From Neoechinorhynchus agilis (Eukaryota; Animalia; Acanthocephala): DNA of 64,000 bases. The stretch spans positions 14,858,784 through 14,922,783 of the forward strand of contig CM121341.1 of assembly GCA_051530055.1 (NCBI GenBank), given 5' to 3'. The notes under the pieces are model-generated. The model worked only from the letters and a program-made list of their open reading frames with translations. It did not search any database and was not told where the DNA came from. Numbering within the stretch: position 1 is the stretch's first letter; each line of letters begins with the position of its first letter. Positions 9,900-54,095 of the stretch are shown here, one piece after another. The position numbers and the translations under genes were made by a program.

Positions 9900-10087
9900 G
9901 TAAAGAAATTATTCAGTATAGTTTCAGTTTCAATTAGCGATGTTTGATTCAGAAATAGATTTATATTGAAAATTTTCGGCCTTTTCGTTGGTGTTCTTCA
10001 GTCAATTGCTTGTAAGTTTATAAATATGTGCCCGAAAATTTTCAATATAAATCTATTTTTGAATCAAACATCGCTAATTGAAACTGT
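9900..10087 (-). mobile_element. Palindromic mini-retroelement with leader motif and degenerate minimal hammerhead core, 12-bp TSD
   Basis: AAAACATTTATT at 9888-9899 and 10088-10099. Inverted arms at about 9924-9980 and 10031-10087. Minus strand reads leader GCACATATTTATAAACTTACAAG, then AUUGA-CUGAAGA-A-(damaged stem II)-GAAA-AUUU-UCAAU. Confidence 0.75.
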
Positions 10088-10891
10088 AAAACATTTATTT
10101 CGCAGAAAGACATTATTTCTCATTTTATGTTCACGTCACCGACAATCATCGCGAGATTGAGCTGTAAATCTTAATCTCGTTACTTTGCAATGTTCCCATA
10201 ATTCAAAAACCAAAGGCTTGGAAATCTTGAATGTTCTGCAGTAAAGAGGAATCGATTGATTTTTGGATCGCTATGTTTGTCAAAACGACAATCAGTGAGT
10301 AGTATTTCCAAGAGTTCTGTCCCTCGTTAAAGTTTATCGTTCTCAATTTTCGCATTTTTCATGTTATGGATAGAACAGGACTTTCATCGAATTTTGGCGG
10401 ACTGCCACTTACGCTTGATTATCGTTTAATCCGCTTATTATGTTAAACCTTATAACCCAATCGTCTTATTAATGGCCCAATCGTTTGTTGTACCGATCGG
10501 AACAGCATGTTTCCGTTACATACTACGATTTGGCGACTTCCAAATTATTGTCGGACAAACATGAACCATTGTTTATTTACAATTTTTGATTGAAACACAT
10601 TGAAGTTCACGAATATGAAGATACAAAACCACAAGTCTATGAACATTCGCTATTCTGAAGCGTAGATTTTTGATAAAGTACAGAAGCACATGAATGAAAC
10701 TAATGGTTATACATAAGTCTTGTAAACATAAGAACAAAGATTTTGCGTAATGTAACCGTGTCATCGAAGAAGCACCAACTCCTCCGTTCCCTACCTATGA
10801 TATTTATGTCTACATAACCACCACCGCCGCCGTGATGGTTTAGAGCAAATATGTGGGAAAGGTTTTGTTGGAAGTAATCGGTTAACCTTAG

Positions 10892-11027
10892 GGTATTTTA
10901 CTCAGATATCTAGCATACGTAAGCACTTCGCTGTGAATTCGTGATGAGTTTATAGCGACGGTATTTTACTCAGATATCTAGCATACGTAAGCACTTCGCT
11001 GTGAATTCGTGATGAGTTTATAGCGAC
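10892..11027. repeat. Perfect 68-bp tandem duplication (2 copies)
   Basis: GGTATTTTACTCAGATATC...TTTATAGCGAC occurs at 10892-10959 and 10960-11027. Confidence 0.95.
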
Positions 11028-11167
11028 TCGAGAAAAGTTGCTTTCACATTCACAAGTAACGACTAGTTGGAAGGATCACATGTTTTTGAAAGTATTTGGA
11101 GGTTGAGAATCATCGGCGAAATGCACTATTTAAAAGGGAATAGCTGTCGTCCTTGCATCACTTTATG

Positions 11168-11392
11168 GCACACGCTTCATTTTGAACCTTATTCGGGATT
11201 CACGAAAAATCCTTGCTCAGCTAACGAAATTATCTATCTTTAAAAATTTCGTCCTTTGGATCATTTCGAAAACGAACATTTCGTTTTTTCTTTTCAGTTG
11301 GCAATGGTTGAATGCACGTTTCATCTTGAACTTGCTTCGGGATTCACGAAAAAATCCTAGCTCAGTTTACGAAATTGTCTATCTTTAAATTT
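11168..11392. repeat. Imperfect ~80-bp direct repeat, period 144 bp
   Basis: TCGGGATTCACGAAAAATCCT.GCTCAG...CGAAATT.TCTATCTTTAAA occurs twice (GATTCACG at 11197 and 11341). Confidence 0.7.
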
Positions 11393-11499
11393 TTTGTCTG
11401 TTATTGATCCCAATGTATATCAGATATTCGGATCATCTCGAGAAAGCGTTTCGATTTTCGTTTCGCAGTTTCTCCATACCGCATTTCGATGTTTTTTTA

Positions 11500-12330
11500 T
11501 CGATATGTATTTATTTTAGCGCTCGCTCACAAACTGTTATATGCCTAGCCGTCCTCGTCCTCAATTGTCGCCCGAATGCTTGCAGTGTTGCCTTTCAACA
11601 CGGCGATGCTGATATTTTGAACCAGGTATTGACCTGACCTTGCATCGCCGGTTGTAACCTGAAGGCGTCGCTTCAGATCCTTCAGAAGTTGAAGAGCCTC
11701 GCTACCAAGAGATCCGTAGGTCCCAGCCCCAAAAGGTGCAAACACATCAGCCCGGGCTAAATTGAGGTATTTTGCCGTTTTCCTTCCTTCCGCAGCACTC
11801 GCTGCACCTCCAGCTTGAACCACCGAGAACTTGAGATTGCTGGCTGCGAGTGTATCGACAGAAGTGGCGTCCCAGATGAGGTATTTACCATCCCGTCACG
11901 GAAATACGGTTCTACGCCCGTCGTCCCTACAGTGCTTGGCAGGTTCCAAAATATTCGGGGCATGTACCGTAACAAGTGCCCGGCTCAGCACCATGTTAAT
12001 TTCGGCATGTCGTGCGAATCTACTAGCTGATTTTCTACAGATGAGACCATGGCATCCCGACGAATCCACATTTGCACCGCAGCGGCAACGGTGGGGATGA
12101 CACATCGGTAGTCCTAGTCTCATTGAAACTCCGACCCGTACTGCCTCGTCGTAGAGGAAAGTACCCACGGATGCCAGCGGGACCGCGTTCAACCAAGCAC
12201 CTGATTCTCTAGTGGAAACTGCTAACAACCTGGCACGGACAACGTCGTCGCTTGAGTCTGATAGGAGAGAGCTTTGAACTCTTGCGACGAGAGGTCGATC
12301 CCACACAGATTGCTTTTGGCGGTTAAGAGC
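11500..12330 (-). mobile_element. 5'-truncated CRE-clade retrotransposon (RT end, CCHC finger, RLE nuclease, 3' UTR)
   Basis: Motifs WDRPLV..ARLLAVSTRESGAWL, HRCRCGA..HGLICR...RHAEIN, DGR, IWDAT and QNISIAVLKGN. One frameshift near 11900; AATAAA after the stop at 11545. Confidence 0.9.
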
Positions 12331-12385
12331 CTTTTGAGATTATATCGTCTCAAATTCATGTTCAAACCCATTACGAATAACTATC

Positions 12386-12598
12386 ATTAGAGCAGTAGTA
12401 TTATTTAGGTCTTCAACCGGTAAATTCTTTTTTATTAAAGATGTTTCTAACCTCGTCAGGTTCATTATCAGTTTATGTTAGTTGTGGTCTTAAGCGTCAT
12501 TTAATAACTAACAAAGCGATGATGAACCCGACGAGATTCGAAACGTCCTTAATAAAAAATTATTTAGCGGGTGAAGACTTCTAAATAAAACTTCTAAT
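12386..12598. mobile_element. Imperfect palindrome of two decayed Penelope-type minimal hammerhead units
   Basis: Arms at about 12402-12483 and 12506-12587. Right arm: AAG-C(-)GATGA-T-GAACC-cgacga-GATTC-GAAAC-GTC-CTT-AATAAA. Left arm (reverse complement): AAA-CTGATAA-T-GAACC-tgacga-GGTTA-GAAAC-ATC-TTT-AATAAA. Confidence 0.7.
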
Positions 12599-13676
12599 CA
12601 TGTACCCCGGTACCTCACATATCGACATATCATTGGCTGAACAAAGCTGTCGATATCTTTTTTAATCATCCAATCTTTTCTTGCGCGAAATCAACTAAGA
12701 TCGTTATTCCTATTGATTTTTTCACTTCTAAGTAATCCATTATTCTGGTTCGTTATTGTGCCAGATGAAAAGTCTCCGTTAAAACAGCTATAAATTACGC
12801 CCGTAATCTGCTTAGCAGAAGTTCGCTAGTTTTTCAACCCGAAAATCGTGCATTTTTAAATGAACTTGTCCTGCCTTTTCAGAATTGTTCATAACCAATG
12901 TACTAGTCTAAGTTCTTCAATAGTTTTTCATAATCGTGTTTAAAAGAAGCTGGAACTCTAAGCTCGCTTAGAACTCAGTTGCCTATGAACATTCCAAAAT
13001 GCCCCGTTTTCGTGATCCTCGGCACAATCTATGTTCTTCATTATCCATGCATCCAAAAATAACCATTAACCTTGCCGTTGGTTCCTTTTCACTGAAGATT
13101 GGGTCCCGGTAACCAAGCAACGACATGCGCATTACATCGCATTATTCATAATTACTAACAGCGGTTTCGAGACGAACTAACGAACGGGAAGCATATGTGA
13201 GTATACATGAAATTTGTGAAGCCTCTTCCCGATTATTTCCTCCCTGTAAGCGACATCCTGTCTTTGTCAGACAAGCTCTATTTTTGGTTGTGTGGTTTCA
13301 CCCGCCTACACATTTCGGTTGGTAATAAAAGCCTCACACAGAAATAGTGGCTGACAAAACGACTCCGTGCTCAGTTGAGTGCCGTAAATGTGCCTGTAGA
13401 GACGATGCGATTCTTAAGCTTTAAAACCTAAGCACTAGCTAAAAAGCTTCAGCTTCTCTTTTAGTCGTCACGCAAAGACTCTCACATACAGTCATATTTG
13501 ATTGAGATGAAAAACGAGTGTCGGTGTAAATGTAACTGTAACAAAAAGAAAAGGTTTGCTAAATTTTGCTTTCGCTCACATACGTTCACTCACACATACC
13601 CTGCACTCATACAACGCGTGTAACGCATATAACCCGAACTTTCAGAATTATTGAATCATCCAACAAAATTGAGATA

Positions 13677-15051
13677 ATGGAGGCTCCGATTTACCTTACC
13701 GAAGAAAAACAAAAGGAATTAGCTGATATCGCTCATAGCATTGTGGCCAAAGGAAAGGGAATTCTCGCAGCTGATGAATCTATCGGTGAGTTTCTCTTTT
13801 AACTTCACTTTTCTATTATGCGGAAGCCAAGAGTACTCTGTGATCTGTACTCACTTAACGATTACTGAATTTTAGCTCTTTCACGGTTTCATGTCTTCCT
13901 TTGGCATCCCAATCTTAACTCGTTTTGCACCAAATCATTTTTAATCTATATCTTAATCAAATTGATAACTCTAAGATTTCGAATAAGAACATTCTACGAT
14001 GCCTTGTGGACTCATTTAAAAATTATTCTTTCTATATATACACCCAGGACTTGACGATTTTCGCTTAGGTTCAATGGCCAAACGGCTAAATCCAATTGGT
14101 CTCGAGAACACTGAAGAGAACCGACGCCTCTACCGTCAAATCCTATTTACTGGAGATGCCGAGCTTGCAAAGTACATCTCAGGAGTTATTATGTTTGATG
14201 AAACGTTCTACCAAAAGGCGGATGATGGCACACCATTTGTTCAAATTCTTCAGAAAAAAGGAATTATTCCTGGAATCAAGGTCGATACCGGTCTAATTCC
14301 GCTTGGCGGTACCAATGAAGAAACAACGACTCAAGGTCTTGATGAGCTCAATAAGCGATGCGCAAATTACAAGAAGAATGGGGCACAATTCGCCAAATGG
14401 CGATGTGCACTTAAAATCGGTCCACGACTGCCATCACATTTGTCAATTATTGAAAATGCCAACGTTTTGGCCCGCTACGCTTCTATTTGTCAACAAAATG
14501 GCTTGGTACCTATTGTTGAACCCGAGATATTGCCTGATGGTGATCATACACTTGCTCACTGTCGGTGGGTAACCGAAAAGGTTCTCGCTGCCACATATAA
14601 GGCGCTCTCAGATCACCACATTTACCTCGAAGGAACTCTTCTTAAACCTAACATGGTTACTTGCGGTCACTCCCATAAGGAACAAGCTTCTCCGATGGAG
14701 GTTGGTCTTGCTACGGTCACCGCCTTAAGACGAACCGTCCCCGCTGCCGTTCCTGGGGTCTGCTTTTTGTCTGGAGGACAAGGAGAGGAACAAGCTACTC
14801 TGAACCTTGACGGGATCAATAAACAGAAACTTCTCAAGCCATGGGCACTTACTTTTAGTTATGGGCGAGCCCTTCAAGCATCCGTACTTAATGCGTGGCA
14901 AGGAAAACCTGAGAACGTAGCAAAAGCTCAACATGAACTTTTGGTTAGAGCAAAGGCTAATTCAGAGGCCGCTCAAGGAATCTATGGCGGAAGCGGAGCA
15001 TCAGGTGCTGCGGCTGATAAAAGTCTTTTCGTAGCCGGCCATAGTTATTAG
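13677..15051 (+). CDS. ALDO: Fructose-bisphosphate aldolase class I; exons 13677-13785 and 14069-15051
   Basis: [10 protein letters not shown] / AKWRC / VPIVEPE / [10 protein letters not shown] / FLSGGQ / FSYGRALQ motifs. A phase-1 GT-AG intron (13786-14068) joins ESIG-SMAKRL. Confidence 0.97.
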
Positions 15052-17060: not shown

Positions 17061-17259
17061 CTATATTGTCGCTATGACAACACTACAGAGGCATTTCAAA
17101 TCTCACAGAAAGTCAGCAGCTGCGCCTTCGAGCTTAAAAGTTCCTTTCATTGGAACGAAACTTGCGAAGTGAAATACATTAAGAACAAAAAGCTTGATGA
17201 AGATTTGCCCCTTTCAAATTTTACATATTACAATTTTTTTATTATTAAACAGTGCAAAA

Positions 17260-30590: not shown

Positions 30591-30599
30591 GTAGAACAA

Positions 30600-33566
30600 T
30601 TTTTTTTAATGTAAGAAATTTATTAACTTATATTATTCTCAATTGTCCTTCACCGTCCCCAAGACACTCGCTGCGTTTCCTCGCTGGATAGCCAAGGATA
30701 TGTTCTGCACCAGGAACGAGCGAGCCCTCCTGTCATTGGTCGAGTTGATCAGTCGATGCCCCAGTTCGAGAACAAAACTCCTCGCCGCACGTCCGAAAGC
30801 TCCTAAGGTTTCCACTGCGAAGGGGACAAAATGATGAGAATTTGTAAAATCGGCGTATTTTGCAACCTTACGAAGCTCAGCTGCTGATGCGGCTCCCTCA
30901 GCCCCGGAGGATGCATCTCGCAGATTGCTGGCTGCAAGGGAGTCGACGCATGTTGCGTCCCATATTAGACATCTGCCCCTGCTCCAAGGAAAAACGGTAA
31001 CTCCATCCGGCCTACGGCCATCGATCCTGCAGATGTTGCTAGGCTCGAGGATATTCGAAGAGTTAGCCGTTTTCAAAGCGCGGCTCAGCAATGCGTTTAT
31101 TTCGGTGTGTCTAGCAAAACGGCCACTTGAGCGTTTACAGGCTAAACCGTGCCTGCCCGAGGGGTCGACTTCCGTCCCGCATCGGCAGGTGTGAGGGATA
31201 CAAACCGGGAGCCCGAGCTTTAGGGACACTGCGATTCTGAGAGCCTCGCCGTCTAATCTCGAACCGATATTTGCTGATGGTACAGCTTTCAACCAGGCGC
31301 CGGACTCTTTGCAGGAAACTGCCGTTAATCGCGTTCTATCCACGTCGGAGAGCGAGTCAAAAAGTGAGGTGTAAACACGCTCCACTAAAGGAATGTCCCA
31401 CGATTTCTGTTTTTCCGGGAGGTCTAGAATCTTGTCGAGGTTAGACAGGGACATCCAAAGATGAAGAGCGGGCTCCAGGCTGATGTCCTCCTCAAAATTA
31501 TGTTTCAAAATCAATCTGGAAAGGCGCTTGGACCTACTAAGAGACGATAGAAAGGCTGGAAGCGCAATGGCTGAGCTGGCACGAATACCGATCCCTCCGT
31601 AGCTTGGGGACAAAGATGCCTGGGTCCAGCCAGTGTCGGGGAGCTTAATATTAAGGATCTTGCATAGACCATCCCTTAAAGAACCATCAATCTCTCTCAA
31701 TTCGGGCTGACATTGAAAGGAAGGGGTTGACCGCAGTTTATGGAGGATGCGTGGAATGAAGATGCAATTTTTTAAAAGGAAGAGACCATCGTGAGGAAAA
31801 GTTCAGAGGCCCTTGATCAGATGATATCAATGGAAGGTCTGATTTTCCTGATATCAGCCTGCATATTCTCCTCGAGAACGCAGCTTCCCAGCAGTTCTAA
31901 GCTGGACTTGGAGATAAGTCGGATATTAGGTGCGGCCTTTTCAAACTCTCTCAAAATTTGTGCGCAGTTTGAGGCCAATTTTTTTACATTCTTCTAAAAG
32001 AACCGTTAAATCTTGTAGGACTTCAGACGGGGAACCTCCTAGAGTAGCGTCATCCAGATACCAGGCGTTGAATGGTGATCGAAGAGATTGTGCCAGATTG
32101 TTTGTCGTCAGAGCAAAACCTAAAGGCCCCAGAGGGTCCCCTTGCTGCACACCCGATTGAGACCAGATTAGTTCATTATTATATACGAGCGGGGTGTGAG
32201 AGCAATATGCTGACTGAAAGTAGGGGAGAAGCTTTGGAATAGTGTTTCCGACTGCTGAGATTAAGATGCCTCGATCGATAGTGTTGAAGGCATTTGCGAA
32301 ATCGCACTTCAGGATTAACTGAACGCCCCTACCAGAATTAATAAAAGAACGCAGCGCGTGGACTATAGCCTCTGCTCCACAAGGAGAGCAGCATTCGAAC
32401 TGGACGGGCCTAAGGATCTGGCCTGCTTTTTCCGCGACCCTTTTTGACAGAATCTTTCCGGTGAGACGGCGAAGGGTAGTTCCGATTGCTATGGGACGAA
32501 TCCCACCGTCCTTCTTATTAAGGGCACACAGGGAAGCCGAAAACATGAAATGTATACCAGTGGCATTCGTGTCGCCTCGAGCGATGAGGTTCACTATAGT
32601 GGTCAAAGCCTTGGCGACTTTTTCCGCAACGCAATGCGCTCCCCCCGAGATTAAGTCCTTTAGATGTTGGGGTCTGAGCCCGTCTAGACCGTGACTTGAA
32701 CCGCCGGCGAATGAGGAGAGGGCCCTTTTCATTTCGACCACATCTATCGGTTTGAGATCTATCGGTGAAGGGGAATGTGAGCTAGGAGGTGGTGGTACGG
32801 CTGAAGGTGGGTGTTTTTCCCGCAAAGCGTTCAAAGTGGTAATTGTGTCCCCCGCAAAAGTATCCGTTGATGAGAGAAGGCGCATGGCTCCACGGATGTC
32901 GCCGTCGGACAACTTGGCCGGTACGCGTTCTCCTAAGCGTCTAGATGAAAAACGACGAGGACCTTCAGATTTCGTCGAAAGGGATGTTGGATCCTCGGCA
33001 GATTTGAGCACAGCGAGGAAATTATCAGGGAAGTTGACGACTCTGGACTTGACAATTGATGTCAAGGATTCCTCTGAGGACTCACCGGCGAATAATACGA
33101 GTCGAGGGAAGGCGAACAAACGCATCCAGGATATTGCGCTATTATTAACGACACATTCATTTAAAAGGTCCGCAAATGCGGAACCTACTTGGTACCGGGC
33201 GCCTCTAGGAATTCGTTTGAGGACGTGATTGGGAAGGACACGAAAAAGCTTCACAATTAGAGGAAGATTTTGTGAATCAAAGTCAAGTTCACAATTTGGG
33301 GGGGGAAGAGCTGATATCTTCAGGGGACATGCCCGACCCTTCGCAGCGTGAAGAACGGAGACCGTGAACATGGAGGAGACCCAATTTCGTGACTCTGACT
33401 TTTTTTAAGCAGATCTTACACAAACCTGTGGAAACCTTGGAGGCGGACGTAGCATCGATGCCGGAAGAAGTAGGTTCGCAAAAAGACATTCTCCAGTACG
33501 AGCGTTAGTGAGTTTGTGTGTGTCCTATGGATTGTTTTGGGTTGAATAATTGCTTGTAAGTTTTGC
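30600..33566 (-). mobile_element. Near full-length CRE-clade retrotransposon (subfamily A copy 1): zinc finger + RT + CCHC + RLE, A8 tail; frameshifted
   Basis: N-terminal CKIC..HVHG..CEGSG; RT motifs GLDGLRPQHL, GIRPIAIG, KCDFANAFNTI, GVQQGDPLGP, WYLDDATL; then HTCRCG..HGLAC..RHTEIN, RPDG, WDATC, VPFAVET, ISLAIQRGN. Partial leader AAAACTTACAAG at the 5' end. Confidence 0.95.
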
Positions 33567-34329
33567 TTTCGGGGTTGACAATTCAGTTTATTGCCCAATC
33601 GTTTTCACCAGGAGGTAACTCTTTTTCTTCGTTGCCTGTTATTATGACTTCTATTGACACAAAAAACATCATTTTTAATTGTGTTCCTTCTAGTTTTTAA
33701 GAGTTTATTTCAGCTTACTTAACGAAGGCTCCAGTTTATGAAAGTTCAAAACCAATTTAGTTCTTTTCAGTCCAGATCGCTAGAATTTTAATTGAACCCG
33801 GAGATCATCCATTTTTGTCTATTAAGGAAAACTAAAGGGAATATTTCTGCGCATTGCGTAGGCACAAAGATAATATCTTCATTTCGATCAGATTGCTTTT
33901 GGTATCTAATTTATTTTAAGTTCAACACGTTAAGGAGATGATCTGCGATTGCATTGTATGCTCGAAATCGTGGTTCACTCATAATAAATGCGAAGCTATT
34001 AAGCAATCGACTTGTTTTTCTGCTAAATGTATTTTCGGTGAATTTTCTCATCTGTGCGCGATTTTATATGGAAATTAAAATTAAGGATCCATTTCAGATT
34101 TTAAAAGCTATATCAAACTGATAAATGAATTAAGGGCGTTAAAATACGCAAACTTCGTCAAATCCCATTCGTGGACTTGGCAAACGCACTCTAATTTCTA
34201 GTCGAATCTCAGCAATTGAGCTTATTGAACAAATTTATGAATTCTGTTAGCAGGAATATAAACAACGAAGGACGATTAATATATAAACACGTTTTATTAA
34301 TGCAAGAAATGTACGATCCACACACTTGC

Positions 34330-36790: not shown

Positions 36791-36814
36791 TTGCTCTGCA
36801 GAAATGAGGCTCTA

Positions 36815-41167: not shown

Positions 41168-41713
41168 CGAAAAAGCATTTCTTGTAATAAGACGAAGCGT
41201 TCAAAAGTATCATTTATTTAACAAAAGTCAACGTAACTTTTAGAAAGGTTATTGATTAATAAAGGTAAAAACGAGAGATTAATTTTTATTAGCATTTAAT
41301 GAATAAACGTGTTAATTGACAAAATTAAAATCAAACAAACACTTGTCATCGGAAGAAGTATTCAGGAATACCATTTATTTTTAAAATAGTCAAAGCAACT
41401 TTTGAAAACGTCATTAATCAATAGAGGTTCACATGAGAGAGATTGATTCTTAATAAAATTTAATAAATAAACGCGTTAATTGACGAAATTAAATTCAAAT
41501 AAGCATTTCCTTTAATCAGGCGATGCGTTCAGGAGTATCGTTCAGTTTTCTAAATAGTGAAAGCAACTTTTAAAAAGTTATTGATTAATAAAGGTAAAAA
41601 CGTGAGATTAATTTTAAATAAGATTTAATAAATAAACGTGTTAATTGACGAAATTAAAATCAAATAAGCATTCATTGTAATCAGAAGAAGAGTTCAGGAG
41701 TATCATTCAGTTT
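41168..41713. repeat. AT-rich ~165-bp tandem array, left block (~3.3 units)
   Basis: AATAAACG.GTTAATTGAC.AAATTAAA at 41302, 41466 and 41631 (periods 164 and 165). Confidence 0.85.
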
Positions 41714-44404
41714 CTCGAATATTTAAAAACTAACAAGCAAATAATTGAGTGAACAACTTGCGAAACAATTACAGTGTTTCGTTTTCGCAATTGACCAAAA
41801 ACGAATATGAGGAAATCAGACGATGGATATAGCGACGGATCAGATTCACCTCCCAGCCCTATACCTCCAAGAAGGCTCAGGACGATCTCAGCATCGGATA
41901 GGTTCTGCCGAAATTCCAAATTACGTCACAATATGTTCAAATCGCCTACAATCGACGCTGCTGACGCAGATAATTTGAACGCGCCACTTATCGATCATGA
42001 TCAACCTGAGAAGACCAACGCTGCCGGGCTCCCACGCGTCTCTACTGGTTTGTGTCCGGTTTGCGGTAAGTCTTTTAAATTAACCAATCTGGGGGTTTTG
42101 TTTGTCCATGGTCCGCGGGATCTCCGCTGTAGTGGGTATGGTTCTCCACCACAATTAACCGAACCTTTCGTGCCTGAGACCCCTCAGATCACCACTGATT
42201 CTATTTCGATACCTGATATCGTGCGGTTTCTGCTCAGTAACGCCCTGAAACGGATCCCTTAAGGCGCGCGATATCTGGTCGCCAAAGCATTTACGGAATT
42301 GCTCAACGATTGCCTTCAAACGAACTGTGCGCCATCATGGACACGGCTCTTCGCTTTCCCGCTCTTAGTCCTCTGCACCAGCGGTGATTCTTTGGTGTCT
42401 TTGACATCAACAATCAAGGAAAGGTTAGCCTTCTTTGAACAAATATTTAACGATTTTGAAAGGAATCTCTGCGAGGTTCGTAAGGGACGCACGAAGGAAG
42501 AGTTTCGCTGCCGTTTTTCAAAACGATCACTGACTGAGCGTGTCTCTTCGAAGCTTGCGGACGGGGATGTTCGGGGGCTGTTCGGTTATTGTCATCCTCC
42601 GACAGTTTCGCAAAAGGAGACAGCGAGACGCTACAAATACTCCGGTCGAATCACCCATGTAGTAGCGGAAGTTTTGAAATTCCATCTCCTCCCATACAAG
42701 ACAGGACGCCCACTCAAATTTCAGAGTTACAAAAGGCCATCTCATCTTTTGCAAATGGTTCAGGTCACGGGCTTGACGGACTAAGGCCTCAGCACCTAAA
42801 GGGTATGATGTCCTTTTCAACTGGTGAAGCAGCTCTCTCTAGGAAGTGCGCTTTCTCGAATAGTCGACCATCTGACTGGAGAGGACCTGAACCCCGTGGC
42901 AAAGGACCTATTTTTCGGAGCCTCATTGTGTGCGCTCACAAAAAAAGAAGGTGGGATCCGTCCCATCGCCGTATCTTCGACGATACGCAGACTCGCATGA
43001 AAAATTCTCTGCAAACATATTACAGAGAAAACTGGACAGCAACTTCGTCCAGTCCAACTGGGCTGCTGCACATCCTGCGGGGCGGAAGCTATTGTCCACT
43101 CGCTCCGAAACTTTGCTACGAGAAGCTCAGAGCCGTGCGTGATTCTTAAGTGTGATTTTCGGAACGCCTTAAACTCTCAATAGAGAAAGCATGTTCTGCG
43201 CAATTAGGGATCACGCACCAGAAGCCTTCCAGTATTTTCTCAATGCCTACGGGACGGCGACTCCTTTGCTTTTCGAAGACCACCTCATTTGGTCCGAAAG
43301 AGGAGTGCAGCAAGGAGATCCCCTCGGTCCAATCGCATTCTCCCTAACAGTAAATCCAATAGCGCATTCTCTCCATCCCGCTTCAACGCTTGGTACTTGG
43401 ATGACGCTACGCTCGGAGGTGATCCCTCCGTTGTACTGCGCGATTTGGAGACGCTGATTAGGGAGACCTCGAAGATGGACATTGAGCTCAACGCTGGAAA
43501 ATGTGAGCTCCTTGTATTGAATATTGGAGACGCCGCCAAAGTCAAAGAACTAATGGCTGGGTTCGAGGCCGTAGCTCCAGGTCTGAAACTCGTGACTCGG
43601 GAGCAACTCAGCCTCCTGGGCAGTTGCATCTTCGATTCAAATGTGGAAGATGAGATCAGCCATATCATACCGAAACTTTCCTTGCTATGCGATAGGGTGT
43701 GCGCTCTCTCGGCTCATGAAGCCTTGTTTCTCATAAAGAACGCGCTCTTCATCCCCAAATTATTGTACAAGGTTCGCACAGCAACATTTTTCAAACACAA
43801 AAAAGGATTGGCAAAGCTGGACGAATAGGTGAGGGCTTGCCTCGAGCGTATTTTAAATGTCCAGCTCTCAGATGAGGCGTGGCGACAAGCTTCTTTGCCT
43901 GTATCATCTGGGGGATTGGGAATTCGAGCACTAGTGGACCTTGCTTTGCCGGCCTTTCTTGTATCGTTTGAGGGGAGCCTACCAGTATCGAAGAAAATTT
44001 TGAAAGAAAAGTTCTGTCTTGACCGGGATTTCGTGGTGGCGGTTGAAGAATGGTGCCAGCAGACAGGCGCTAACCATGTTCCCGTGAATGACCTCAGACA
44101 GTCGATCTGGGATGGACCCCTTGTCGCGAGAGCTCACGGCTCTCTACTTTCCGGTTCTCGCGATGGGGTCGTCCGAGCTAGACTGTTGGCACTTTCAACA
44201 CGAGAATCTGGGGCGTGGTTGGAGGCTCTTCCTCTGGCATCAGTGGGAACTCTTCTTACTGACGAGGTAACGAGGATCGCAGTATCCTTTTAAGACTTGG
44301 TCTCCCGATATGCACACCCTATCGCTGTCGATGTGGGTCTTTGGTTGATGCTTTAGGGGCGACACGGTCTCGTCTACAGAAGGTCAGCAGGAAGCTTTTC
44401 ACGC
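41714..44404 (+). mobile_element. CRE-clade retrotransposon subfamily B: leader, 5' UTR, zinc finger, RT, truncated inside the RLE; decayed
   Basis: Starts with CTCGAATATTTAAAAACTAACAAG. Encodes CPVC..FVHG..CSGYG, GLDGLRPQHL, GVQQGDPLGP, WYLDDATL and GLGIRAL..LALPAF; ends at HGLVYRRSAGSFSR. Confidence 0.92.
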
Positions 44405-46889
44405 CGTCCAGAGTCGCCAACTTCCCTGATAATTTCCTCGCTGTGCTCAAATCTGCCGAGGATCCAACATCCTTTTCGACGAAATCTGAAGGTCCTCATC
44501 GTTAAACGCTTAGGAGAACGCGTATCGGCCAAGTTGTCCGACGGCGACATCCGTGGAGCCGTGCGCCTTCTCTCATCAACGGAAACTTTTGCAGGGGACA
44601 CAATTACCACTTTGAACGCTTTGCGGGAAAAACACCCACCTTCAGCCGTACCACCACCTCCTAGCTCACATTCCCCTTCACCGATAGATCTCAAACCGAT
44701 AGATGTGGTCGAAATGAAAAGGGCCCTCTCCTCATTCGCCGGCGGTTCAAGTCACGGTCTAGACGGGCTCAGACCCCAACATCTAAAGGACTTAATCTCG
44801 GGGGGAGCGCATTGCGCTGCGGAAAAAGTCGCCAAGGCTTTGACCACTATAGTGAACCTCATCGCTCGAGGCGACACGAATGCCACTGGAATACATTTCA
44901 TGTTTTCGGCTTCCCTGTGTGCCCTTAATAAGAAGGACGGTGGGATTCGTCCCATAGCAATCGGAACTACCCTTCGCCGTCTCACCGGGAAGATTCTGTC
45001 AAAAAGGGTCGCGGAAAAAGCAGGCCAGATCCTTAGGCCCGTCCAGCTCGGATGTTGCTCTCCTTGTGGAGCAGAGGCTATAGTCCACGCGCTGCGTTCT
45101 TTTATTAATTCTGGTAGGGGCGTTCAGGTAATCCTGAAGTGCGATTTCGCAAATGCCTTCAACACTATCGACCGAGGCATCTTAATCTCAACGGTCGGAA
45201 ACACTATTCCAGAGCTTCTCCCCTACTTTCAGTCAGCATATTGCTCTCACACCCCGCTCGTATATAATAATGAACTAATCTAGTCTCAATCCGGTGTGCA
45301 GCAAAGGGACCCTCTGGGGCCTTTAGGTTTTGCTCTGACGACAAACAATCTGGCGCAATCCCTTCGATCACCATTCAACGCCTGGTATCTGGATGACGCT
45401 ACTCTAGGAGGTTCTCCGCCTGAAGTCCTACAAGATTTAACGGTTCTTTTAGAAGAATGTAAAAAAATTGGCTTCAAACTGAACCCAAGCAAGTGCGAAA
45501 TTTTGGTTTTGAATTGTGGGGACGAGGAACGCGCACAAATTTTGAGAGAGTTTGAAAAGGCCGCACCTAATATCCGACTTATCACCAAGTCCAGCTTAGA
45601 ACTGCTGGGAAGCTGCGTTCTCGAGGAGAATATGCAGGCCGAGATCAGGAAAATCAGACCTTCCATTGATCTCATCTGTTCAAGGGCCTCTGAACTTTTC
45701 CCTCACGATGCTCTCTTCCTTTTAAAAAAATTGCATCTTCATTCCACGCATCCTCCATAAACTGCGGTCAACCCCTTCCTTTCAATGTCTGCCCGAATTG
45801 AGAGAGATTGATGGTTCTTTAAGGGATGGTCTATGTAAGATCCTTAATATTAAGCTCCCCAACACTGGCTGGATCCAGGCATCTTTGCCCACAAGCTACG
45901 GAGGGATCGGTATTCATGCCAGCTCAGCCATTGCGCTTCCAGCCTTTCTATCGTCTCTTAGTAGTTCCAAGCGCCTTTCCAGATTGATTTTGAGACATAA
46001 TTTTGAGGAGGACATCAGCCTGGAGCCCGCTCTTCATCTTTGGATGTCCCTGTCTAACCTAGGCAAGATTCCAGACCTCCCGGAAAAACAGAAATCGTGG
46101 GACATTCCGTTAGTGGAGCGTGTTCACACCTCACTTTTTGACTCGCTCTCCGACGTGGATATAACGCGATTAACTGCAGTTTCCTGCAAAGAGTCCGGCG
46201 CCTGGTTGAAAGCTGTACCATCAGCAAATCTCGGTTCGAGATTAGACGGCGAGGCTCTCAGAATCGCAGTGTCTCTGAGGCTCGGGCTCCCGGTTTGTAT
46301 CCCTCACACCTGCCGATGCGGGACGGAAGTCGACCCCTCGGGCAGGCACGGTTTAGCCTGTAAACGCTCAAGTGGCCGTTTTGCTAGACACACCGAAATA
46401 AACGCATTGCTGAGCCGCGCTTTGAAAACGGCTAACTCTCCGAATATCCTCGAGCCTAGCAACATCTGCAGGATCGATGGCCGTAGGCCGAATGGAGTTA
46501 CCGTTTTTCCTTGGAGCAGGGGCAGATGTCTAATATGAGACGCAACATGCGTCGACTCCCATGCAGCCAGCAATCTGCGAGATGCATCCTCCGGGGCTGG
46601 GGGAGCCGCATCAGCAGCTGAGCTTCGTAAGGTTGCAAAATACGCCGATTTTACAAATTCTCATCATTTTGTCCCCTTCGCAGTGGAAACCTTAGGAGCT
46701 TTCGGACGTGCGGCGAGGAGTTTTGTTCTCGAACTGGGGCATCGTCTGATCAACTCGACCAATGGCAGGAGGGCTCGTTCGTTCCTAGTGCAGAACATAT
46801 CCTTGGCTATCCAGCGAGGAAACGCAGCGAGCGCTTGGGGACGGTGAAGTACGATTGAGAATAATAAAAGTTATTTTAGTTAAAAAAAA
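44405..46889 (+). mobile_element. CRE subfamily A copy 2, 5'-truncated, A8 tail; fused directly to the subfamily B element
   Basis: Near-identical reverse complement of 30600-33050. Nonsense changes at 45281-45283 and 46536-46538. Confidence 0.95.
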
Positions 46890-47176
46890 TTGACGAAATT
46901 AACACCCAATAAACATTTATTGTAATAAGACGAAGCATTCAGGCACAACATTTATTTTAAAAATGGTGAAAGTTACTTTAAATTTTTTTATTAATCAATA
47001 AAGGTTCATAGTAGCCATTAATTTTAATAACATTTAATAAATAAACGTGTTAATTGACGAAATTAACATCAAATAAACATTTATTGTAATCGGACGAAGC
47101 ATTCAGGCATAACATTTATTTTTAAAATGGTGAAAGTAACTTTTAAAAAGGTTATTAATCAAAAAAGGTTCATAAG
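46890..47176. repeat. AT-rich ~165-bp tandem array, right block (~1.8 units)
   Basis: TTGACGAAATTAAC...AAACATTTATTGTAAT..GACGAAGCATTCAGGCA repeated; same family as 41168-41713. Confidence 0.85.
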
Positions 47177-49046
47177 AAAGATAATCCACGTCGATGTTTT
47201 CCTGAGCGGCCTTAGAGTTCACAGAAAAAATGACTGTTGCGATATGAATAAAATGATCTTTGCAAAACGATTTTTTCGGACAAATATGCCTAATTTTTAA
47301 CGAATATCCCGATGACCCAAACACAGATTAAATTATTTATTAAATTTGATCATAGATTAAATTAGTTACAAGCGATTTACAGAAGGTAGTAAACTGTTAA
47401 AAAAATTGATGATGAAATAATGACCTACAATTTGATTTTAATTAAAAGCTCAGCCTAGCAGACATGATATAGGCTCCTACAATAAGGTGGACCTCGTGAA
47501 AAATTTAATTTCTAAGAATAAGGACACAGTTGAACGTCTTGATAGTTTCTGTCACCATATGAGACGAAATCAACAAATTGCCTCGAAAGTCTTTGCTAAG
47601 TGTCGCTATGTCACTAAAGGCATCTTATGAAAGGCCCATTATTCTTATGCCTGATTTGTCAATGGGAGTTGTGATTTGCAACTCTCGTGCTGGCATCAGA
47701 TTTGAACGGCGGAACGAATTTGATGAGTGTGTGTCGCTGGACAACGTCCATCGTACAACACAAGGCCGTTGGAATCATTTTTGTCTTATCAAAACCAAGG
47801 ATCTTCCTTTCTAAAACCATAGAAAGCTCTTTTAATCCATCCGATGAAGCTGTTGCATCTCTCTCGCAATCTATTATGTTACTTAGATGGTTTATCCACA
47901 TCAATGTTTCTTCATACTTCCATTAAAAGCTGTAGTCAATGAAATCCAGTTGAAGAAACTGGAAGATTCTTCTGATTGCGCATTCGTCTTATTTGCCGTA
48001 CCCATTTCCTAACTTTTGCATTTGTAATCTCAGTCGAATGAATTTAATTGGGATTGCCACGTTTAATTTCATGTTTTCTAAAAGAAGCTCTGCATCAAAT
48101 CGTACATTTGCTAAAACCAGGTTTTAAAAATTGTTTAGTTATCGATATGATTTTCGACATCCATTGCAATCTATTAATGATAACCAAACTCAGAAAATCG
48201 GTCTTAAGTTCACAAACGACAAAAGTTAGAGTAAAAGAGTGCATCCCAAAGTTAAAAAAATAATCTCCGACTCTTGCGATCATGAGCGTAGAAAAACATT
48301 AAGTCCAACTAAAATTTTAAGTTTTGGTTCAAAAGAGCGATCATTGCAAACGTTCCGCTTTCTTTGGGAACTAATTTTTTCTATTTTTTAAACATAGAAA
48401 TCTCGCAAATACATCAGCATCTTCTTTTTGGTCATTTTAATTTCTTCGCCAGAAAACAACCAATATGAACAATTCAATCTTCACACATCTTTTTGGAAGA
48501 CTTAGAAGTAACGAAAACCCAAAGACTTACCTTTTCCTTACTAATTTTTTATAATTTTTTCCGAAAATTCCTCTTCCATCAATGACGACCCTTTTCACAA
48601 TCTGAATTTTAATTTCACTCACTTTTCAGTTTGTAGACAATCTAAAATGTTCATAATGAAGCAAAAATTATCCATTTATGCCTATTTAATGGGGAACTGA
48701 TTCGCATATCAAATACGAACGATATAGTGATGAAAGGGTATTTCCCCATTACATAGCGATTCGGTCCCCCGATATTTGATTGAATGTGTCTTAATTTTTT
48801 AACTTTTCTTTCAAGTTGTCAAAATCAAATGCATGTAAAAAGCAAAAATTCAATCTCAAAACTCAACGTTTTCCGGTTTTAACACTCGTATAGCCTGATA
48901 AGAAAAACAGTTTAAATTTTAATAATGAATACCATCAAGAGTGCCGTTCCCTACCACCTGATTCCGTCCGCTTTCTCACCGGCAGAAAGTGGTTGTATTT
49001 ACTTCTGCCGCAGACAATCTTATCCTTTATTCCATAGCTGTTTAAG

Positions 49047-51221
49047 ATGACTGAGAAACAAATGCTGTCACGCGAAGAGCGTATAAGCGAACTGATGAAG
49101 GAATTGGAAATCAATCAAGCAGAGCTGATAGAGCTACAATCGATGTGGGAGGTGGCAGCAATTGGAACCTTCGCACAGTCATTGGAAAATCGAATGAATA
49201 TCGTCTATGACCAATACGATCTGGAAATCGGCTTCCTAGTTAAAAGCCCAAATTCAATTATAACGCGTCTCATAAACGTTCTCGTTGTTCAAGGCAGAAG
49301 TCGTACGTTCAATGACCGGGTGCTCAGCAGAGTTCGGCGGTGGAGGCGCGGTCTTCGACGAACGGACGGTCGAGCGTTGACTGAAGAAAAGGCTGCAGCG
49401 GCGATGAAAATTGATCCGCGAGTGTATGATTACATCCGGAACTTGTTTGAGTTTCTTGATGAATCCTCAAAACACCAAGTTGAATTGGATTTCTTCAAGT
49501 GGCCAATAAAGACTCGTGTTTGGGTCATCAAGACAATCTGTGACGAAAAGACCGCATTTGCCTCCAAATACATGGACGGTCGTGGCGCCGAACCTTCAAC
49601 CATTGGGAAACGTGCCGGATCAGATGGATATTTGTGCTTCGTTTCATTCCTTCCACATATCCGAGCTTTTGATTCCTCCGGTATTGTGGCCCTTACAAAG
49701 TCCCAGCTAGTCAAGTATCTCGATTCTAACAAAAAGGCATCTAATCAGCTGCCAGCCAAATTGAAAGCTGTAAAAGACAATGATGCTCTCGATGCTTGTT
49801 GTGATGTTCTCAGTGAGTACGTCGAAAGTGTTCGGGAAGCCAAGAAGGTGGAGGAAGAAAATTTGAGGTTGCAGCGAGAAATGGAAGAAGAGGAAAGGAA
49901 ACGGTTGGAAGAAGAAGAGGCAGAGATGACTCGGAGAATGGAGCATCAAATTCAAACCCGAAGGCAGAGTGCTCTAAGGGGGAAGAAGGTACAGAGGCGT
50001 GATCCTGAGTTAAACGATGAAGAGAGCAGTTACGAAGAATCTCCAACGTCAGATTCATCAAATGATTCCGACTATACTATACCAACCAACGGATCATCGT
50101 CGACGGGTAAAAAACGAAGAGGCGGGCGAACATCAAGTTTCCTTAAACTTAGGATCCATAAGAGTAATCAATTTAGTATGGTTTTTTATAAAATTCATTT
50201 GAATTAGTTTTAAACACGTATGAATCTCCAATAATCTTCTGAATATTGAACTCTGGGTCTTTAAAATTGTCTGGTATATTTTATTTATAACATGTTTTGC
50301 AACTCAAATTGGTCTGCGACATTTTTCTTCGACTCAACAAACAATTCTGAATTTTAAGCATTAAATGATTTTTAAAGCACATTTAATTGTTTTGTTAAAA
50401 ATTTAGTTTCCTTAACCTGCATGGATTCTATCGATAACGTCTCGATAGGCAGTGGAATCAACTCAATTGGAAGCGGTCGCTTACTGCACCAACGAATTCC
50501 ACTCAACCGTCCTTACTCTCATTTAAGTAATACGCTTAGAACTCTTTACTCGCCTCACAGTAGTGCTCAGTATCGAATGCGACACCCGATGCTTGCCCGG
50601 CCTCGTCCAGTCTATGAGTCGAACAATCGAGCCCTTCCACCGGACTATTATCAAAGAAGTCGTGAAGCAATAGAGGAGGCCAGTCGAGTGTTTCGCACAA
50701 ACACCGTTCCATCGCATGCAATGCCGTTAGCTCTTCAACCGGACGCCCTAAAGCGCTATGACAATAAACAATACTTGAACGATCGTGACATAGACTCAGG
50801 TGATGATGGACCAGATCCAACGTCCCGTCCAGCACGAATTGTGCGGAATGGCGATTTTCGCACAGTGATTCGCACAAGTCGCCTAAGTAGACAATATCCA
50901 GTGGCTATGCTTCCTTCATCCAATCTAAACACAACTCAAGGCCATTCTTGTGAAATGGATGGACTGTACAGTTCACAACTGCATGCGAAATTTGTTCAGG
51001 AAAAGGCTGAACGAATGTCTATGAGTGCTGAGGTTGAAATGAATGAGAAGGCTGATAGAAGGAAGCGTAAATACTCGGACCAGGACAATGACTGTGGAAT
51101 CGCTACTGATGAAGCTTTGCTAGAAACATTGAGTAGATGCGCCAGGAAGATCGATATGGAGAACGAGGAACAAGATGATGGAAGCGGTTCGGAGGAACAG
51201 GAAGCGGATTGTGAACATTGA
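49047..51221 (+). CDS. DDT/WHIM-domain chromatin protein (CECR2/RSF1-like N-terminus); exons 49047-50175 and 50407-51221
   Basis: ELQSMWEVAAIGTF and FFKWPIKTRVWVIKTICD resemble the CECR2-type motifs ELRSWWEVPAIAHF and FQDLPLRTRVEILHRLCD. A phase-1 GT-AG intron joins the two ORFs in frame (the join is inferred). Confidence 0.65.
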
Positions 51222-51673
51222 CGGAGATTATCAGCGCCGCGAAAAGATTCTATGAACTACGATTTGTTAAATAGGTCCATTCTAAGAATGTAAGAGTGGT
51301 GTGTTGGTGGAAATTATTGCGCACATGTGCCACATAGAAATTTGAGTTTATCCAACTGATCTGTTTTCGGGATTTTCCACATATTACATCTCTAAATGAA
51401 CAACGCCAAAGCTCCGATTAGTTTTATAACGTCTATTTGCACATGGGATGCTCAAAGCTTTCTAAAAAATCAGTCGTTCTATCGTATTTTTGAAAAAAAG
51501 TTTCTCTGGGCAAATGTGTTTCATTATTTGTTTAATCGATTTCGTTGGTTAGGAAAATATAATCTCCTGTTAGTTGAAAAATAAAAATTGTGGATTTCTT
51601 CTTTCCTCGTTTTAATTCATCCGTTTAATCCTCCGCTCTCGAGATTCAATTTCAAGACTACGAGCAACGACCG

Positions 51674-52696
51674 ATGATCCTGCTCCGAAAATTTACAAGC
51701 ATCGGATATCCCCTAAGACGATTCTTGGTCTCATCAACCTCCAGCCTCAAAACTGTATGTACAAATGATCAGATTCGCAAATTCCGATCGGAGATGTTCA
51801 CTAACGAGCGCGAGCGGCAAGCATCAATGCTACGACGAATCGAAAAGATCAAAGTGGTTGTAGATGATCCACTAGCCAATCAAGATAGCGATTCAGCTCC
51901 AACCTACTCGACTACTCTCATGATGAACCAGAACTCGTCTACTCCTTTTCATTGTGCACTTCATCTCAGTGAAGTCCTTTGTGATAGAAGCGTTTTGACC
52001 TTTGTTGACGGTCAACCTTGGGACATGCACCGATCGCTTGTAAGCGATTGCTCAATGGAGTTCGTGCATTTTATGAGTGATTCTCACGACAAGCTTCAAT
52101 CGGTCAATCGGGCTTATTGGCGGTCATGTTCCATGGTACTTGGGTACATCCTTGAAACGTGTTTCTCAAATAAGTATCCAGTAGAGCTATGCAGTTTCCC
52201 ACCACCTAATCTAACCAGTGGTTCATTCGTATACGATTGCCGCTTAAGCATTCCCGAGTGGGTTCCAAATCAGCGTGAACTACGATGCATGTCCATTCGC
52301 GCATACGAAATACGAGACGAATGCCTCGATTTTGAATGCTTAAACGTTCGTCGGGATTTCGCAGAGTCGATGTTTCAGCATAACCAGTGTAAATTGGCTC
52401 AAATTAAGGAGATGTGCTCCAGTGAAGACGGTCGCGTCTCTTTGTACAGAATTGGAGATTTTGTCGATATTTCACAAGGACCAATGATATCTAACACACA
52501 ACAGTTGGGTCGGTTCGAAATCTGTTCCATTCATAATATCGACAGTAAGAGTTATGGTCGCCTTCAAAGGGTCCAAGGTGTTTCTATACCCGCTCAGTTA
52601 AGATTGCATTATTGGACTTTTGACTTACTTATGAAACGAGCTGAACGCTTAAATCCTGCTAAACTACCAAGTCTTAAAAATCCTATCATATCGTAA
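51674..52696 (+). CDS. MRPL39: Mitochondrial ribosomal protein mL39 (threonyl-tRNA-synthetase-like TGS/SAD folds), intronless
   Basis: FTNERERQ...RIEKIKV, STPFHCALHLSE, PWDMHRSL, VNRAYWRSCSMVLG, GSFVYD, LYRIGDFVDISQGPMISNT and LQRVQGVSIP..LRLHYWTF. Confidence 0.9.
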   Translation: MILLRKFTSIGYPLRRFLVSSTSSLKTVCTNDQIRKFRSEMFTNERERQASMLRRIEKIKVVVDDPLANQDSDSAPTYSTTLMMNQNSSTPFHCALHLSEVLCDRSVLTFVDGQPWDMHRSLVSDCSMEFVHFMSDSHDKLQSVNRAYWRSCSMVLGYILETCFSNKYPVELCSFPPPNLTSGSFVYDCRLSIPEWVPNQRELRCMSIRAYEIRDECLDFECLNVRRDFAESMFQHNQCKLAQIKEMCSSEDGRVSLYRIGDFVDISQGPMISNTQQLGRFEICSIHNIDSKSYGRLQRVQGVSIPAQLRLHYWTFDLLMKRAERLNPAKLPSLKNPIIS

Positions 52697-53648
52697 ATAT
52701 CCTAATTGTGGATTCCATTTGTGAAGATAATTTTTGAAATTTGTGCCCTTTTGCGCTAACAATATAATATCTTACTAGACAACAAAAAAGACGCTATTAG
52801 TATTAATGACGAATATCTAGTCTCATTTTTTAATTACTTTAAATCTTATTTTCGACAATCTCCCCTATACCAAACCAATCATCGTTATAAAAATGTCCAG
52901 ATAGTTCGAGAACGTGTAATGCACTCTCCTTTTCTTTTATCTCACGTTCAGGCTTCAAAAACTTTTAAAGCAAATTCCAGGAAGGCGTGCGCTTGAGTAT
53001 TTTATGGAAAAATCAGTCTAAGAAATAACGAACCTAATCGTAGACTGCTGAAGTTTCGCAAACGAATAATCTATTTATTACTGGCGTTATGATTATAAAT
53101 TTCAAACTGCGACAATCACCAATTTGTTCAAAGTCTTTAAAAATGAAATTTTCCTCTGAATACCGTTTCCCATCTCAATCATTTTTTTCGTTCCATAAAA
53201 GCGTTTTTCATATCTTCATTAATTTCAATCGCTTGTCCATTAAAACTTTCTTCTTTTTTGTTTCAACCATTCTTCATATTTCACTTCGTATCCTCTCCCC
53301 ATTGCGCCACAACAGCTCGTTATTAAGCTGCATGCGTGTGAAAACACATACATCCATGGTACATTAACGCAACTGAGAACGCCATTTGCTTTTAGCTGAC
53401 TTCATTCCTTGGGCGTAATTTGGTTTTAAATCCACTCTTAGGGTAAAGATCGAATCAGGCTTTGTATTTTTTGCAATTTTGTACCAACGCGGAGAATGTA
53501 AAGTGCCTTTCATAAGCACTGACACTTTTTGTTATTCTTTGTATTGAAAATCTGTTCAATATTAACGCTCGTTTACTTCTAGAAAACATTGAAAATATTG
53601 AGGATTCAACCTTGGACACCATAATTTCTCACGTGGCATTATTAAATA

Positions 53649-53870
53649 TGTTATTTGTTGATAGGAGAGATAAATGAAATTAAGATTTTATTGGATATTT
53701 CGATCCACTATCTCGGATCTTCTTCAGCGATTGCTTGTAAGTTTTTAAATATTCGAGTTAACTCAGCAATCGCTGAAGAAGATCCGAGATAGTGGATCGA
53801 AATATCCAATAAAATCTTAATTTCATTTATCTCTCCTATCAACAAATAACAATGAATTATCTTTTCAATC
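53649..53870. mobile_element. Perfect ~86-bp-arm palindromic mini-retroelement with minimal hammerhead cores and leader in the loop
   Basis: Arms at about 53649-53735 and 53765-53851. Core CUGAAGA-A-GAUCC-gagauagu-GGAUC-GAAA-UAUC (53773-53806) followed by AATAAA. TTAAATATGT is duplicated at 53642-53651 and 53871-53880. Confidence 0.85.
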
Positions 53871-54095
53871 TTAAATATGTGTTCTTTGGTGATTATAAAA
53901 ATAGATACCGTTTTATTGATCTCAATATTTCGTCCGTTCGACTTCTTCAGGTTGCTTGTAAGTCTTTAAATATGGGCTCACAAGCAACCTGAAGAAGTCC
54001 GGTGAGACGGCGGCCGAAATATTGAGAACAATAAAACAGTCTCTATTTTTATAATCACTAAAGAACATATATATAAATGAACAACTTCTTTACGA
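53871..54095. mobile_element. Second palindromic hammerhead mini-retroelement (different family), 12-bp TSD
   Basis: CATTATTAAATA at 53637-53648 and 54096-54107. Core at 53989-54023: CUGAAGA-A-GUCCG..CGGCC-GAAA-UAUU. The loop carries GCCCATATTTAAAGACTTACAAG on the minus strand. Confidence 0.8.

Follow-up and report, generated by a model that had tools for sequence, protein, structure and literature searches.

CRE, SLACS and CZAR of trypanosomatids and NeSL-1 of C. elegans are retrotransposons of the type with a restriction-like endonuclease (RLE) that insert into spliced leader (SL) genes, the leader being their target. A different association is known from dinoflagellates, where retrogenes are tagged by a DNA-encoded leader, DinoSL, as a result of mRNA recycling (PMC6050394, PMC5585692, PMC12014239). 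Penelope-like elements carry minimal hammerhead ribozymes and occur as head-to-head inverted insertions (PMC4209133, PMC8557442, PMC3846280), and their transposition mechanism is still undefined (PMC3846280, PMC8557442); the literature searched, including these three papers, makes no mention of a spliced leader or of trans-splicing on them. Bdelloid rotifers trans-splice and a monogonont rotifer has been reported not to (PMC1925144); the bdelloid leader, as tabulated in PMC3795323 after Pouchkina-Stantcheva and Tunnacliffe 2005, is the 23-nt GGCTTATTACAACTTACCAAGAG. For acanthocephalans no report of trans-splicing was found in the literature searched, and the paper describing the 46.2-Mb genome of Neoechinorhynchus agilis is without mention of it (PMC12690905). 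Here we analyse a 64-kb stretch of this acanthocephalan genome (contig CM121341.1; hereafter the window, to whose full length all coordinates refer unless another contig is named), in which a short motif recurs at six sites on otherwise unrelated retroelements, together with the whole genome searched, 46,219,100 bases in 102 contigs.

We conclude, with a probability that we put at roughly 85%, that this motif is a real spliced leader and that retroelement RNAs were trans-spliced and then copied back into DNA. The first-pass annotation had made the same proposal, which now finds support in SL genes, in a junction on the mRNA of a host aldolase and in element bodies that exist in two states. The genes, the exon/donor boundary, this one host junction, the two body states, element leaders that match gene variants and tandems of relic leaders are all direct observations.

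The six sites read as they had been described: four are at the apex of inverted repeats, one heads the element CRE-B and one lies, in part, in CRE-A1 (coordinates are collected in the table below). The copies at CRE-B and at 53734 match at 23 of 24 positions, as claimed, with a single difference. An 11-mer of the motif, one mismatch allowed, has 10 matches where 3.75 are expected, a number reached in none of 100 shuffles, and genome-wide the 19-nt core ATATTTAWARACTWACAAG gives 386 matches with at most one mismatch, versus 3 for the reversed control. In 30 sampled loci the motif was always in sense and either formed the exon of an SL gene or made up the 5′ portion of a repeat, far from the random placement and orientation that would have spoken against a leader. 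The earlier statement that it always occupies the 5′ edge of an element in sense orientation stands for the orientation, but not for the edge, the CRE-A1 copy being an internal relic. Site 12494, formerly taken for the most diverged copy of the main motif, was misjudged and carries the leader class of tandem arrays.

These sampled loci also place the end of the motif. CA follows AAG in every one of them; in 5 of the 30 the motif goes on into GTAAGTATTGGC... and conserved sequence, and in the remaining ones it runs into unrelated repeat bodies whose first letter is nearly always A. Since this subset of copies has a GT donor right after ...AAGCA, the conserved block ends exactly at a 5′ splice donor. 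The motif had been ended at AAG with a caveat of 3 nt; the boundary lies 2 nt beyond, at ...AAGCA. At three of the sampled loci (L016, L017 and L019) the upstream flank is common as well. L016 and L019 (G000:C1:2.18 and 2.57 Mb) carry a leader-like block about 308 nt 5′ of a multicopy gene for a protein with a signal peptide and acidic repeats; this gene, with an upstream flank common to its copies, may have arisen as a host retrogene tagged by the leader and have been duplicated afterwards.

An SL RNA-like gene, to be looked for according to the first-pass annotation, is present in the genome in both dispersed and tandem form, with the motif, a donor and conserved stems. In all copies the exon ends in ...CA and the donor is GTAAGT or GTGAGT. 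Pattern searches of the genome recovered about 40 dispersed copies: before GTAAGT the exon ends in ...AAAACTTACAAGCA in 14 and in ...ACTTACAAACA in about 9, before GTGAGT it ends in ...AAAAACTTGCAAACA in 11 (the SL-c genes) and in ...AACACTTGCAAACA in 3, and there are a few further single variants. The SL-c exon end consists of CAAGT or CAGTT followed by GAAAAAACTTGCAAACA, then GTGAGT. Both C2 (13.89-13.92 Mb) and contig C21 carry tandem arrays with a period of 309 bp; the array exons, GCGTTCATTACTAACAAACA or GCGTCCATTAATAACAAACA, precede GTAAGT, and the commonest is the ATTACTAACAAACA type (39 of the 124 units counted within the 40 kb examined). Dispersed genes have in common a AAAAGARCGAGGAYACAACACGAG-like box about 50-75 nt 5′ of the donor, beyond which their flanks differ.

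When 14 genes of all classes are aligned, about 90 nt past the donor are conserved, and RNAalifold predicts three stems. In stem I the exon ACTTAC pairs with the donor GTAAGT, stem II shows a compensatory change from UGGC/GCCA to CGGU/ACCG between dispersed and array classes, and stem III is formed by GCCC...GGGC. Compensatory changes affect three pairs, and folds predicted from single sequences agree with these stems. The best candidate for an Sm site is a weak one, AAUAAUYGG, or else AAUUUAAUAAUGG stretches, in a single-stranded A-rich region. These features support the motif as the first exon of a true family of SL RNA genes, which is polymorphic. Kilobases of homology had suggested that the SL-a genes on C1 are parts of a larger transposon; this was rejected, because a core of about 120 nt is common to differently flanked copies and to the array, and the gene itself is therefore the conserved unit. 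These C1 genes do lie in multi-kilobase repeated units (L010 versus L012, G000:C1:1.42-1.46 Mb). In four of five such units, though not in L010, a hammerhead-tail insertion of 188 bp stands about 340 nt 5′ of the SL exon and brings an acceptor of its own, TTTTTTAG.

Like the bdelloid leader, the one described here is short and AT-rich, would belong to an SL RNA of about 100 nt and comes from the same larger clade, Syndermata; both leaders hold the block AACTTAC(C)AAG near their 3′ end. The resemblance, to which the first-pass annotation had pointed, is real, yet partial. Here the leader ends in ...AAGCA or ...AAACA, whereas the bdelloid one ends in ...AAGAG; it is probably longer, about 26-33 nt as suggested by the apexes of foldbacks; and it comes in at least 8 gene-encoded or element-borne variants, a tandem-array class included. 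This comparison concerns the leader exon only.

On host mRNA, a leader is carried by the transcript of a class-I fructose-bisphosphate aldolase gene lying in the window, with its ATG at 13678 and TTTCAG at 13640-13645. The evidence consists of contigs assembled from four public runs, X1-X4, which are RNA, since the aldolase intron 13785-14067 is removed in all four at a depth of about 1,500-3,600. A contig of X3 (depth 1,493) reads adapter, then GAAAAAACTTGCAAACA, then the aldolase exon from 13646, and a contig of X2 (depth 3,295) has 26 unaligned letters ahead of 13647. The 17-mer GAAAAAACTTGCAAACA is the exon end of SL-c genes and has 11 genomic copies elsewhere. It has no copy anywhere in the 64-kb window and so does not stem from a nearby cis exon. 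The expectation that host mRNAs bear the leader is therefore borne out for aldolase, which carries the variant ...AAAAACTTGCAAACA at an AG acceptor. The same acceptor (13645/13646) is also joined in cis to the upstream exons 12743-13196 and 13453-13551/3 at a depth of 15-333; this low-depth use looks like what is expected of an outron, or like read-through from an upstream unit.

The decisive new evidence for trans-splicing comes from bodies of the elements themselves, which present either an acceptor or one of several leader variants at the same nucleotide; genome-wide, these states were read from pattern and DNA matches. In a scan for the hammerhead core, a pyrimidine tract and AG stand before leaderless bodies (for example window 57329, L037, L011 and L012), at the exact nucleotide where the leader joins in others. 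Family ATGACTGAWGAGGCGAGG (ATGACTGAWGAGG) numbers 424 copies genome-wide; in the first 100 of the list, about 44 copies show ..ATTTTTAG (..TTTTTAG) before the body and about 48 carry a CA-ending leader, be it SL-a, -b, -c or another. Family ATCGCTGAAGAAGATCCGAG (ATCGCTGAAGAAG), that of the 53734 element in the window, numbers 247 copies, and among its first 100 listed 21 read ..GTGTTTTAG before the body and about 55 carry leaders. These are SL-a in about 17 copies, SL-b in 2, SL-c in 11, the AACACTTGCAAACA type in 4 (SL-c2 is among the leaders named), the tandem-array type ATTACTAACAAACA in 5, AAAACTTACTGACA in 2 and others, such as ..CACTTTAACA and ..GATTAATTTACA, in about 13. The rare leader AAAACTTACTGACA matches a single gene, at C1:955682. 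Over the hammerhead-tail families there are at least 8 leader variants, and six of these have a counterpart among the SL gene variants of this genome. One body with one join nucleotide, several gene-encoded leaders and sister copies with an acceptor is the signature expected of trans-splicing followed by reverse transcription. As an observation apart, the body of the 53734 family is also repeated head to tail at G000:C1:6621489-6622173, in a short array whose spacings are 132 and 255 nt and in which TATCCGAGTTCGCA precedes each unit, a retrozyme-like tandem form.

The motif could instead be a shared internal promoter or initiator that elements carry or exchange, with no trans-splicing at all. 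Its constant sense orientation on the 5′ side, the correlation between leader variant and body subfamily in one family and the relic inherited by CRE-A1 copies all agree with this idea. However, conserved small nuclear RNA-like genes have this sequence as an exon that stops exactly at the GT donor, a variant of it is found on the aldolase mRNA at an AG acceptor, sister copies have a splice acceptor at the motif's very end nucleotide, and its spacing in CRE-B is far from fixed (36-167 nt). A shared promoter alone cannot account for the exact exon-end junction or for the acceptor-bearing sister copies, and we regard it as a very improbable explanation.

Trans-splicing followed by reverse transcription recalls the dinoflagellate case, in which a DNA-encoded leader likewise stands at the 5′ end of retrocopies and truncated tandem relics reflect repeated trans-splicing and retroposition. 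Both hallmarks of SL-relic retrocopies, a leader ending exactly at the exon boundary and tandem truncated relics, are found here. Unlike in dinoflagellates, the host is an animal, the tagged sequences are mainly retroelements (Penelope-type tails and RLE-type elements without long terminal repeats, non-LTR) and the unspliced, acceptor-bearing state survives alongside.

Short tail elements take the form of foldbacks with the leader at their apex. In 15 of them the left arm continues into an antisense leader, TGCTTGTAAG..., over a variable 4-31 nt, after which come the complete sense leader and the right arm. Copies of the same family (window 53734, L015, L024) differ in their apexes and in the 5′ parts of their leaders, so that foldbacks appear as independent retro-events and not as DNA copies of one palindrome. 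Such a layout would fit a cDNA that reversed direction at the 5′ end of the RNA or just short of it. Among sense leaders, the longest read ..ACACGAACTCGAATATTT...AAGCA, and the apexes suggest a leader exon of about 26-33 nt, the longest ones having about 31-33 nt. An extra leading G in two related copies might, speculatively, be derived from the cap.

As in Penelope-like elements, a candidate hammerhead core (CUGANGA...GAAA) is followed by a 4-nt palindrome and an inverted, 5′-truncated partner forms the foldback; head-to-head insertion with such a partner is the arrangement described for these elements in PMC8557442. The inner junction is here a spliced leader and not an arbitrary truncation point, which implies that the template was a spliceosome-processed sense RNA. 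The hammerhead-like core CTGA[AT]GA..helix II..GAAA with AUAU/AAUU is present in 40 scanned copies, in which helix I was not found, and a scan of the window with Rfam gave no family at gathering score. In a search for a coding parent of the tails, the longer acceptor-bearing copies examined contained no intact open reading frame (ORF). RNA contigs cover the 9922-10089 foldback at a summed word depth of 94-758.

Two side observations bear on transcripts of these elements. Over window positions 9897-10093 and 12458-12654, the summed word depth of RNA contigs is about 25-760 and much exceeds that of neighbouring sequence, so the mini-element families, or their many copies, are transcribed. In addition, the leader antisense in foldback arms (e.g. 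window 53765-53800) holds a perfect GTAAGT donor and the antisense of the hammerhead CTGAAGAAG box, CTTCTTCAG, is acceptor-like; foldback transcripts would thus bear cryptic splice signals on both strands.

Template jumping is known for reverse transcriptases (RTs) of both Penelope and RLE type, and foldbacks show that turn-back events do occur here. If, as in U6-L1 chimeras, an RT left the element RNA and continued on SL RNA, which is abundant, the leader would be added without any splicing of the element. Yet the junction coincides exactly with the end of the exon in every case, none of about 40 inspected junctions or about 100 listed contains SL intron sequence, and the body side of the junction is a genomic AG acceptor in sister copies. 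Template switching is in our opinion improbable, if slightly less so than the shared promoter.

The names CRE-A1 and CRE-B were given in the first-pass annotation; their class is read here from domains and motifs. Both encode an RT (RVT_1), for which the best relatives of solved structure are R2 proteins, with weak matches, and in their C-terminal ORF we read CCHC and RPD..D..K..KY endonuclease motifs of the PD-(D/E)XK type. With CRE, SLACS, CZAR and NeSL-1 they share the RT, a C-terminal CCHC, the PD..D..K restriction-like endonuclease and an association with the spliced leader; unlike those elements, they would have received the leader at the RNA stage, and no SL genes flank them. CRE-B has at least 40 related genomic copies. 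From just 5′ of the ATG onwards, L021 and the window copy share 96% identity, except for a 33-nt insertion in the latter, and they differ in the sequence between leader and ATG, 67 nt in the window versus about 155 nt in L021, where this linker matches only short reused modules. In other copies the leader is 36-167 nt upstream, and in two an SL-c-like leader is only 12 nt ahead of the ATG. The 5′ untranslated region (UTR) of CRE-B was considered as a hammerhead-like module; this was rejected, the segment being a relic leader. This 12-mer is also joined to hammerhead-tail bodies elsewhere, and its chance occurrence is about 0.008 per 64 kb. For CRE-A1, 11 copies have the common junction CTTACAAGCA followed by ATTATTC. 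The sequence upstream of the relic, which reaches to about 33595, is common to 7-8 copies and 31 nt long in six, so that the relic is an inherited, internal part of the family. One copy (C2:2153956) has a full leader, 15 nt and then the relic.

Since the window elements have an RLE endonuclease, usually of a site-specific type, and transposon fragments cluster around SL-a genes, the elements might be thought to insert into SL RNA genes, the motif being target DNA. Against this, the sequence 5′ of element-borne leaders has no match to the SL promoter box, the 3′ flanks do not go on with GTAAGTATTGGC and foldback leaders are flanked by the element's own inverted arm. Both CREs of the window are surrounded by other repeats and not by SL genes, and the upstream flank of the CRE-B leader is unrelated to the SL gene promoter. 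Nowhere do the flanks of the window elements run into the promoter or intron of an SL gene, and the first-pass annotation was right in denying that the motif is a target site. For the window copies this explanation is already contradicted, and it is the least credible of those considered. As to the flanking repeats themselves, the 5′ flank of CRE-A1 (33640-33690) has its match in a tandem satellite of 159 bp at G000:C3:6.89 Mb, and CRE-B is bordered on both sides (41620-41713 and 46890-47140) by diverged copies of a repeat of about 155 nt (aataaataaacgtgttaattgacgaaattaac...), which may be its preferred target.

To return to acquisition of the leader by trans-splicing, we propose that SL RNAs would donate their ...CA-ending exon to AG acceptors of host pre-mRNAs, as shown for aldolase. 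In Penelope-type elements a pyrimidine-tract/AG acceptor just 5′ of the hammerhead-bearing 3′ tail would take the leader; for the RNAs of CRE-A1 and CRE-B, the acceptors used would lie within the 5′ UTR or ahead of it, although no acceptor-bearing CRE copy was found. The SL-capped RNAs would be reverse-transcribed and inserted, by which the leader would become DNA at the 5′ end of the new copy. In short tail elements the cDNA would probably turn back at or near the RNA 5′ end, which would place the leader at the apex of a head-to-head foldback, and repeated rounds would leave tandem relic leaders. Leader-bearing copies may themselves seed new ones, or may be dead ends.

Several points weigh against this scheme. 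The host junction is single, based on contigs and of the SL-c variant rather than the SL-a of window elements. On the side of the genes, a canonical Sm site (AAUUUUGG; RAU4-6GR) was not found in the alignment or folds, and no SL or hammerhead family of Rfam matches the SL-a gene or the tandem array, even at permissive E-values. Rfam hammerhead models likewise have no match on the mini-elements at E-values up to 10, where only hairpin-like microRNA models appear. The motif is internal in CRE-A1 and inherited by most copies, and the linker of the window CRE-B is unique genome-wide, no parent copy having been found. In family ATGACTGAWGAGGCGAGG the leader variant tracks the body subfamily, which points to the DNA-encoded leader being inherited to some extent, or to layers of different age. 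Finally, a leader-bearing copy has CA and not AG before its body and so cannot be re-spliced there, and the scheme leaves the persistence of leader-bearing lineages unexplained.

A broader proposal, which we consider unlikely as a whole, is that Penelope- and RLE-type retroelements of acanthocephalans regularly pass through SL trans-splicing during their life cycle. An internal acceptor would recruit the leader and with it a cap for promoter-less element RNAs, and the DNA-encoded leader would serve as a portable 5′-end definer or internal promoter, a role like that of the SL sequence in the SL RNA gene of Ascaris. Leader-bearing copies would thereby stay transcription-competent and seed further copies. 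If this were true, the leader would mark the exact RNA 5′ end and the head-to-head junction of Penelope elements would be a turn-back of the cDNA on a spliced sense template.

The SL sequences, genes and mRNA junction reported here are the first concrete ones for Acanthocephala, and the leader variants allow gene models and operon calls of this parasite to be corrected. The leader is also a natural tag of the 5′ ends of retroelement RNA templates: hundreds of copies keep the states before and after splicing, which permits a direct reading of which RNAs were reverse-transcribed. Moreover, the inverted junction of Penelope twin insertions at the 5′ end of spliced sense RNA bears on the mechanism by which these elements transpose. 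Recycling of trans-spliced RNA would in this way be extended from dinoflagellate genes to animal transposons.

Table. Leaders, leader-bearing elements and splice sites in the 64-kb window.
Feature	Position	Strand	Remarks
Foldback mini-element	9922-10089		arms 9922-9979/10032-10089, 58 nt, 97% complementary
Leader, full copy of a head-to-head pair	10007-10031	-	inverted partner truncated within the body
Diverged inverted repeat around the 12494 leader	arms 12409-12474/12513-12578		82% complementary
SL-d-type leader (tandem-array class, GCGT...ACTAACAAAGCG), apex of a diverged foldback	12494-12518	+	compared with array exons
Trans-splice acceptor of the aldolase gene (TTTCAG then A)	13640-13646	+	mRNA carries the leader from 13646
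CRE-A1, RLE-type non-LTR element	30600-33595	-	RVT_1; family 5′ end at about 33595
14-nt relic leader inside the CRE-A1 5′ UTR	33551-33564	-	
CRE-B, RLE-type non-LTR retrotransposon with leader	41714-46889	+	RVT_1 in ORF 44534-45283; 3′ A-run
26-nt DNA-encoded leader (ACTAAC variant) at the CRE-B 5′ end	41714-41739	+	matches the SL-a exon, from CTCGAAT to ...AAGCA
Relic leader ACTTGCGAAACA in the CRE-B 5′ UTR	41756-41767	+	16 nt past the full leader
Foldback mini-element	53649-53851		arms 53649-53735/53765-53851, 87 nt, 100% complementary
Leader at the apex of the perfect hammerhead-tail foldback	53732-53757	-	body family of 247 copies
Second foldback mini-element	53871-54076		arms 53871-53936/54011-54076
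Leader at the apex of the second foldback	53953-53977	-	inverted arm enters the antisense leader by 10 nt
Unspliced-state copy of the 53955 family	57313-57432	+	...gttttgtgtgtAG in place of the leader

A third retroelement class is represented at window positions 2323-2946 by an ORF fragment of a non-LTR element of the apurinic/apyrimidinic (AP) endonuclease type, in whose vicinity no leader was seen.

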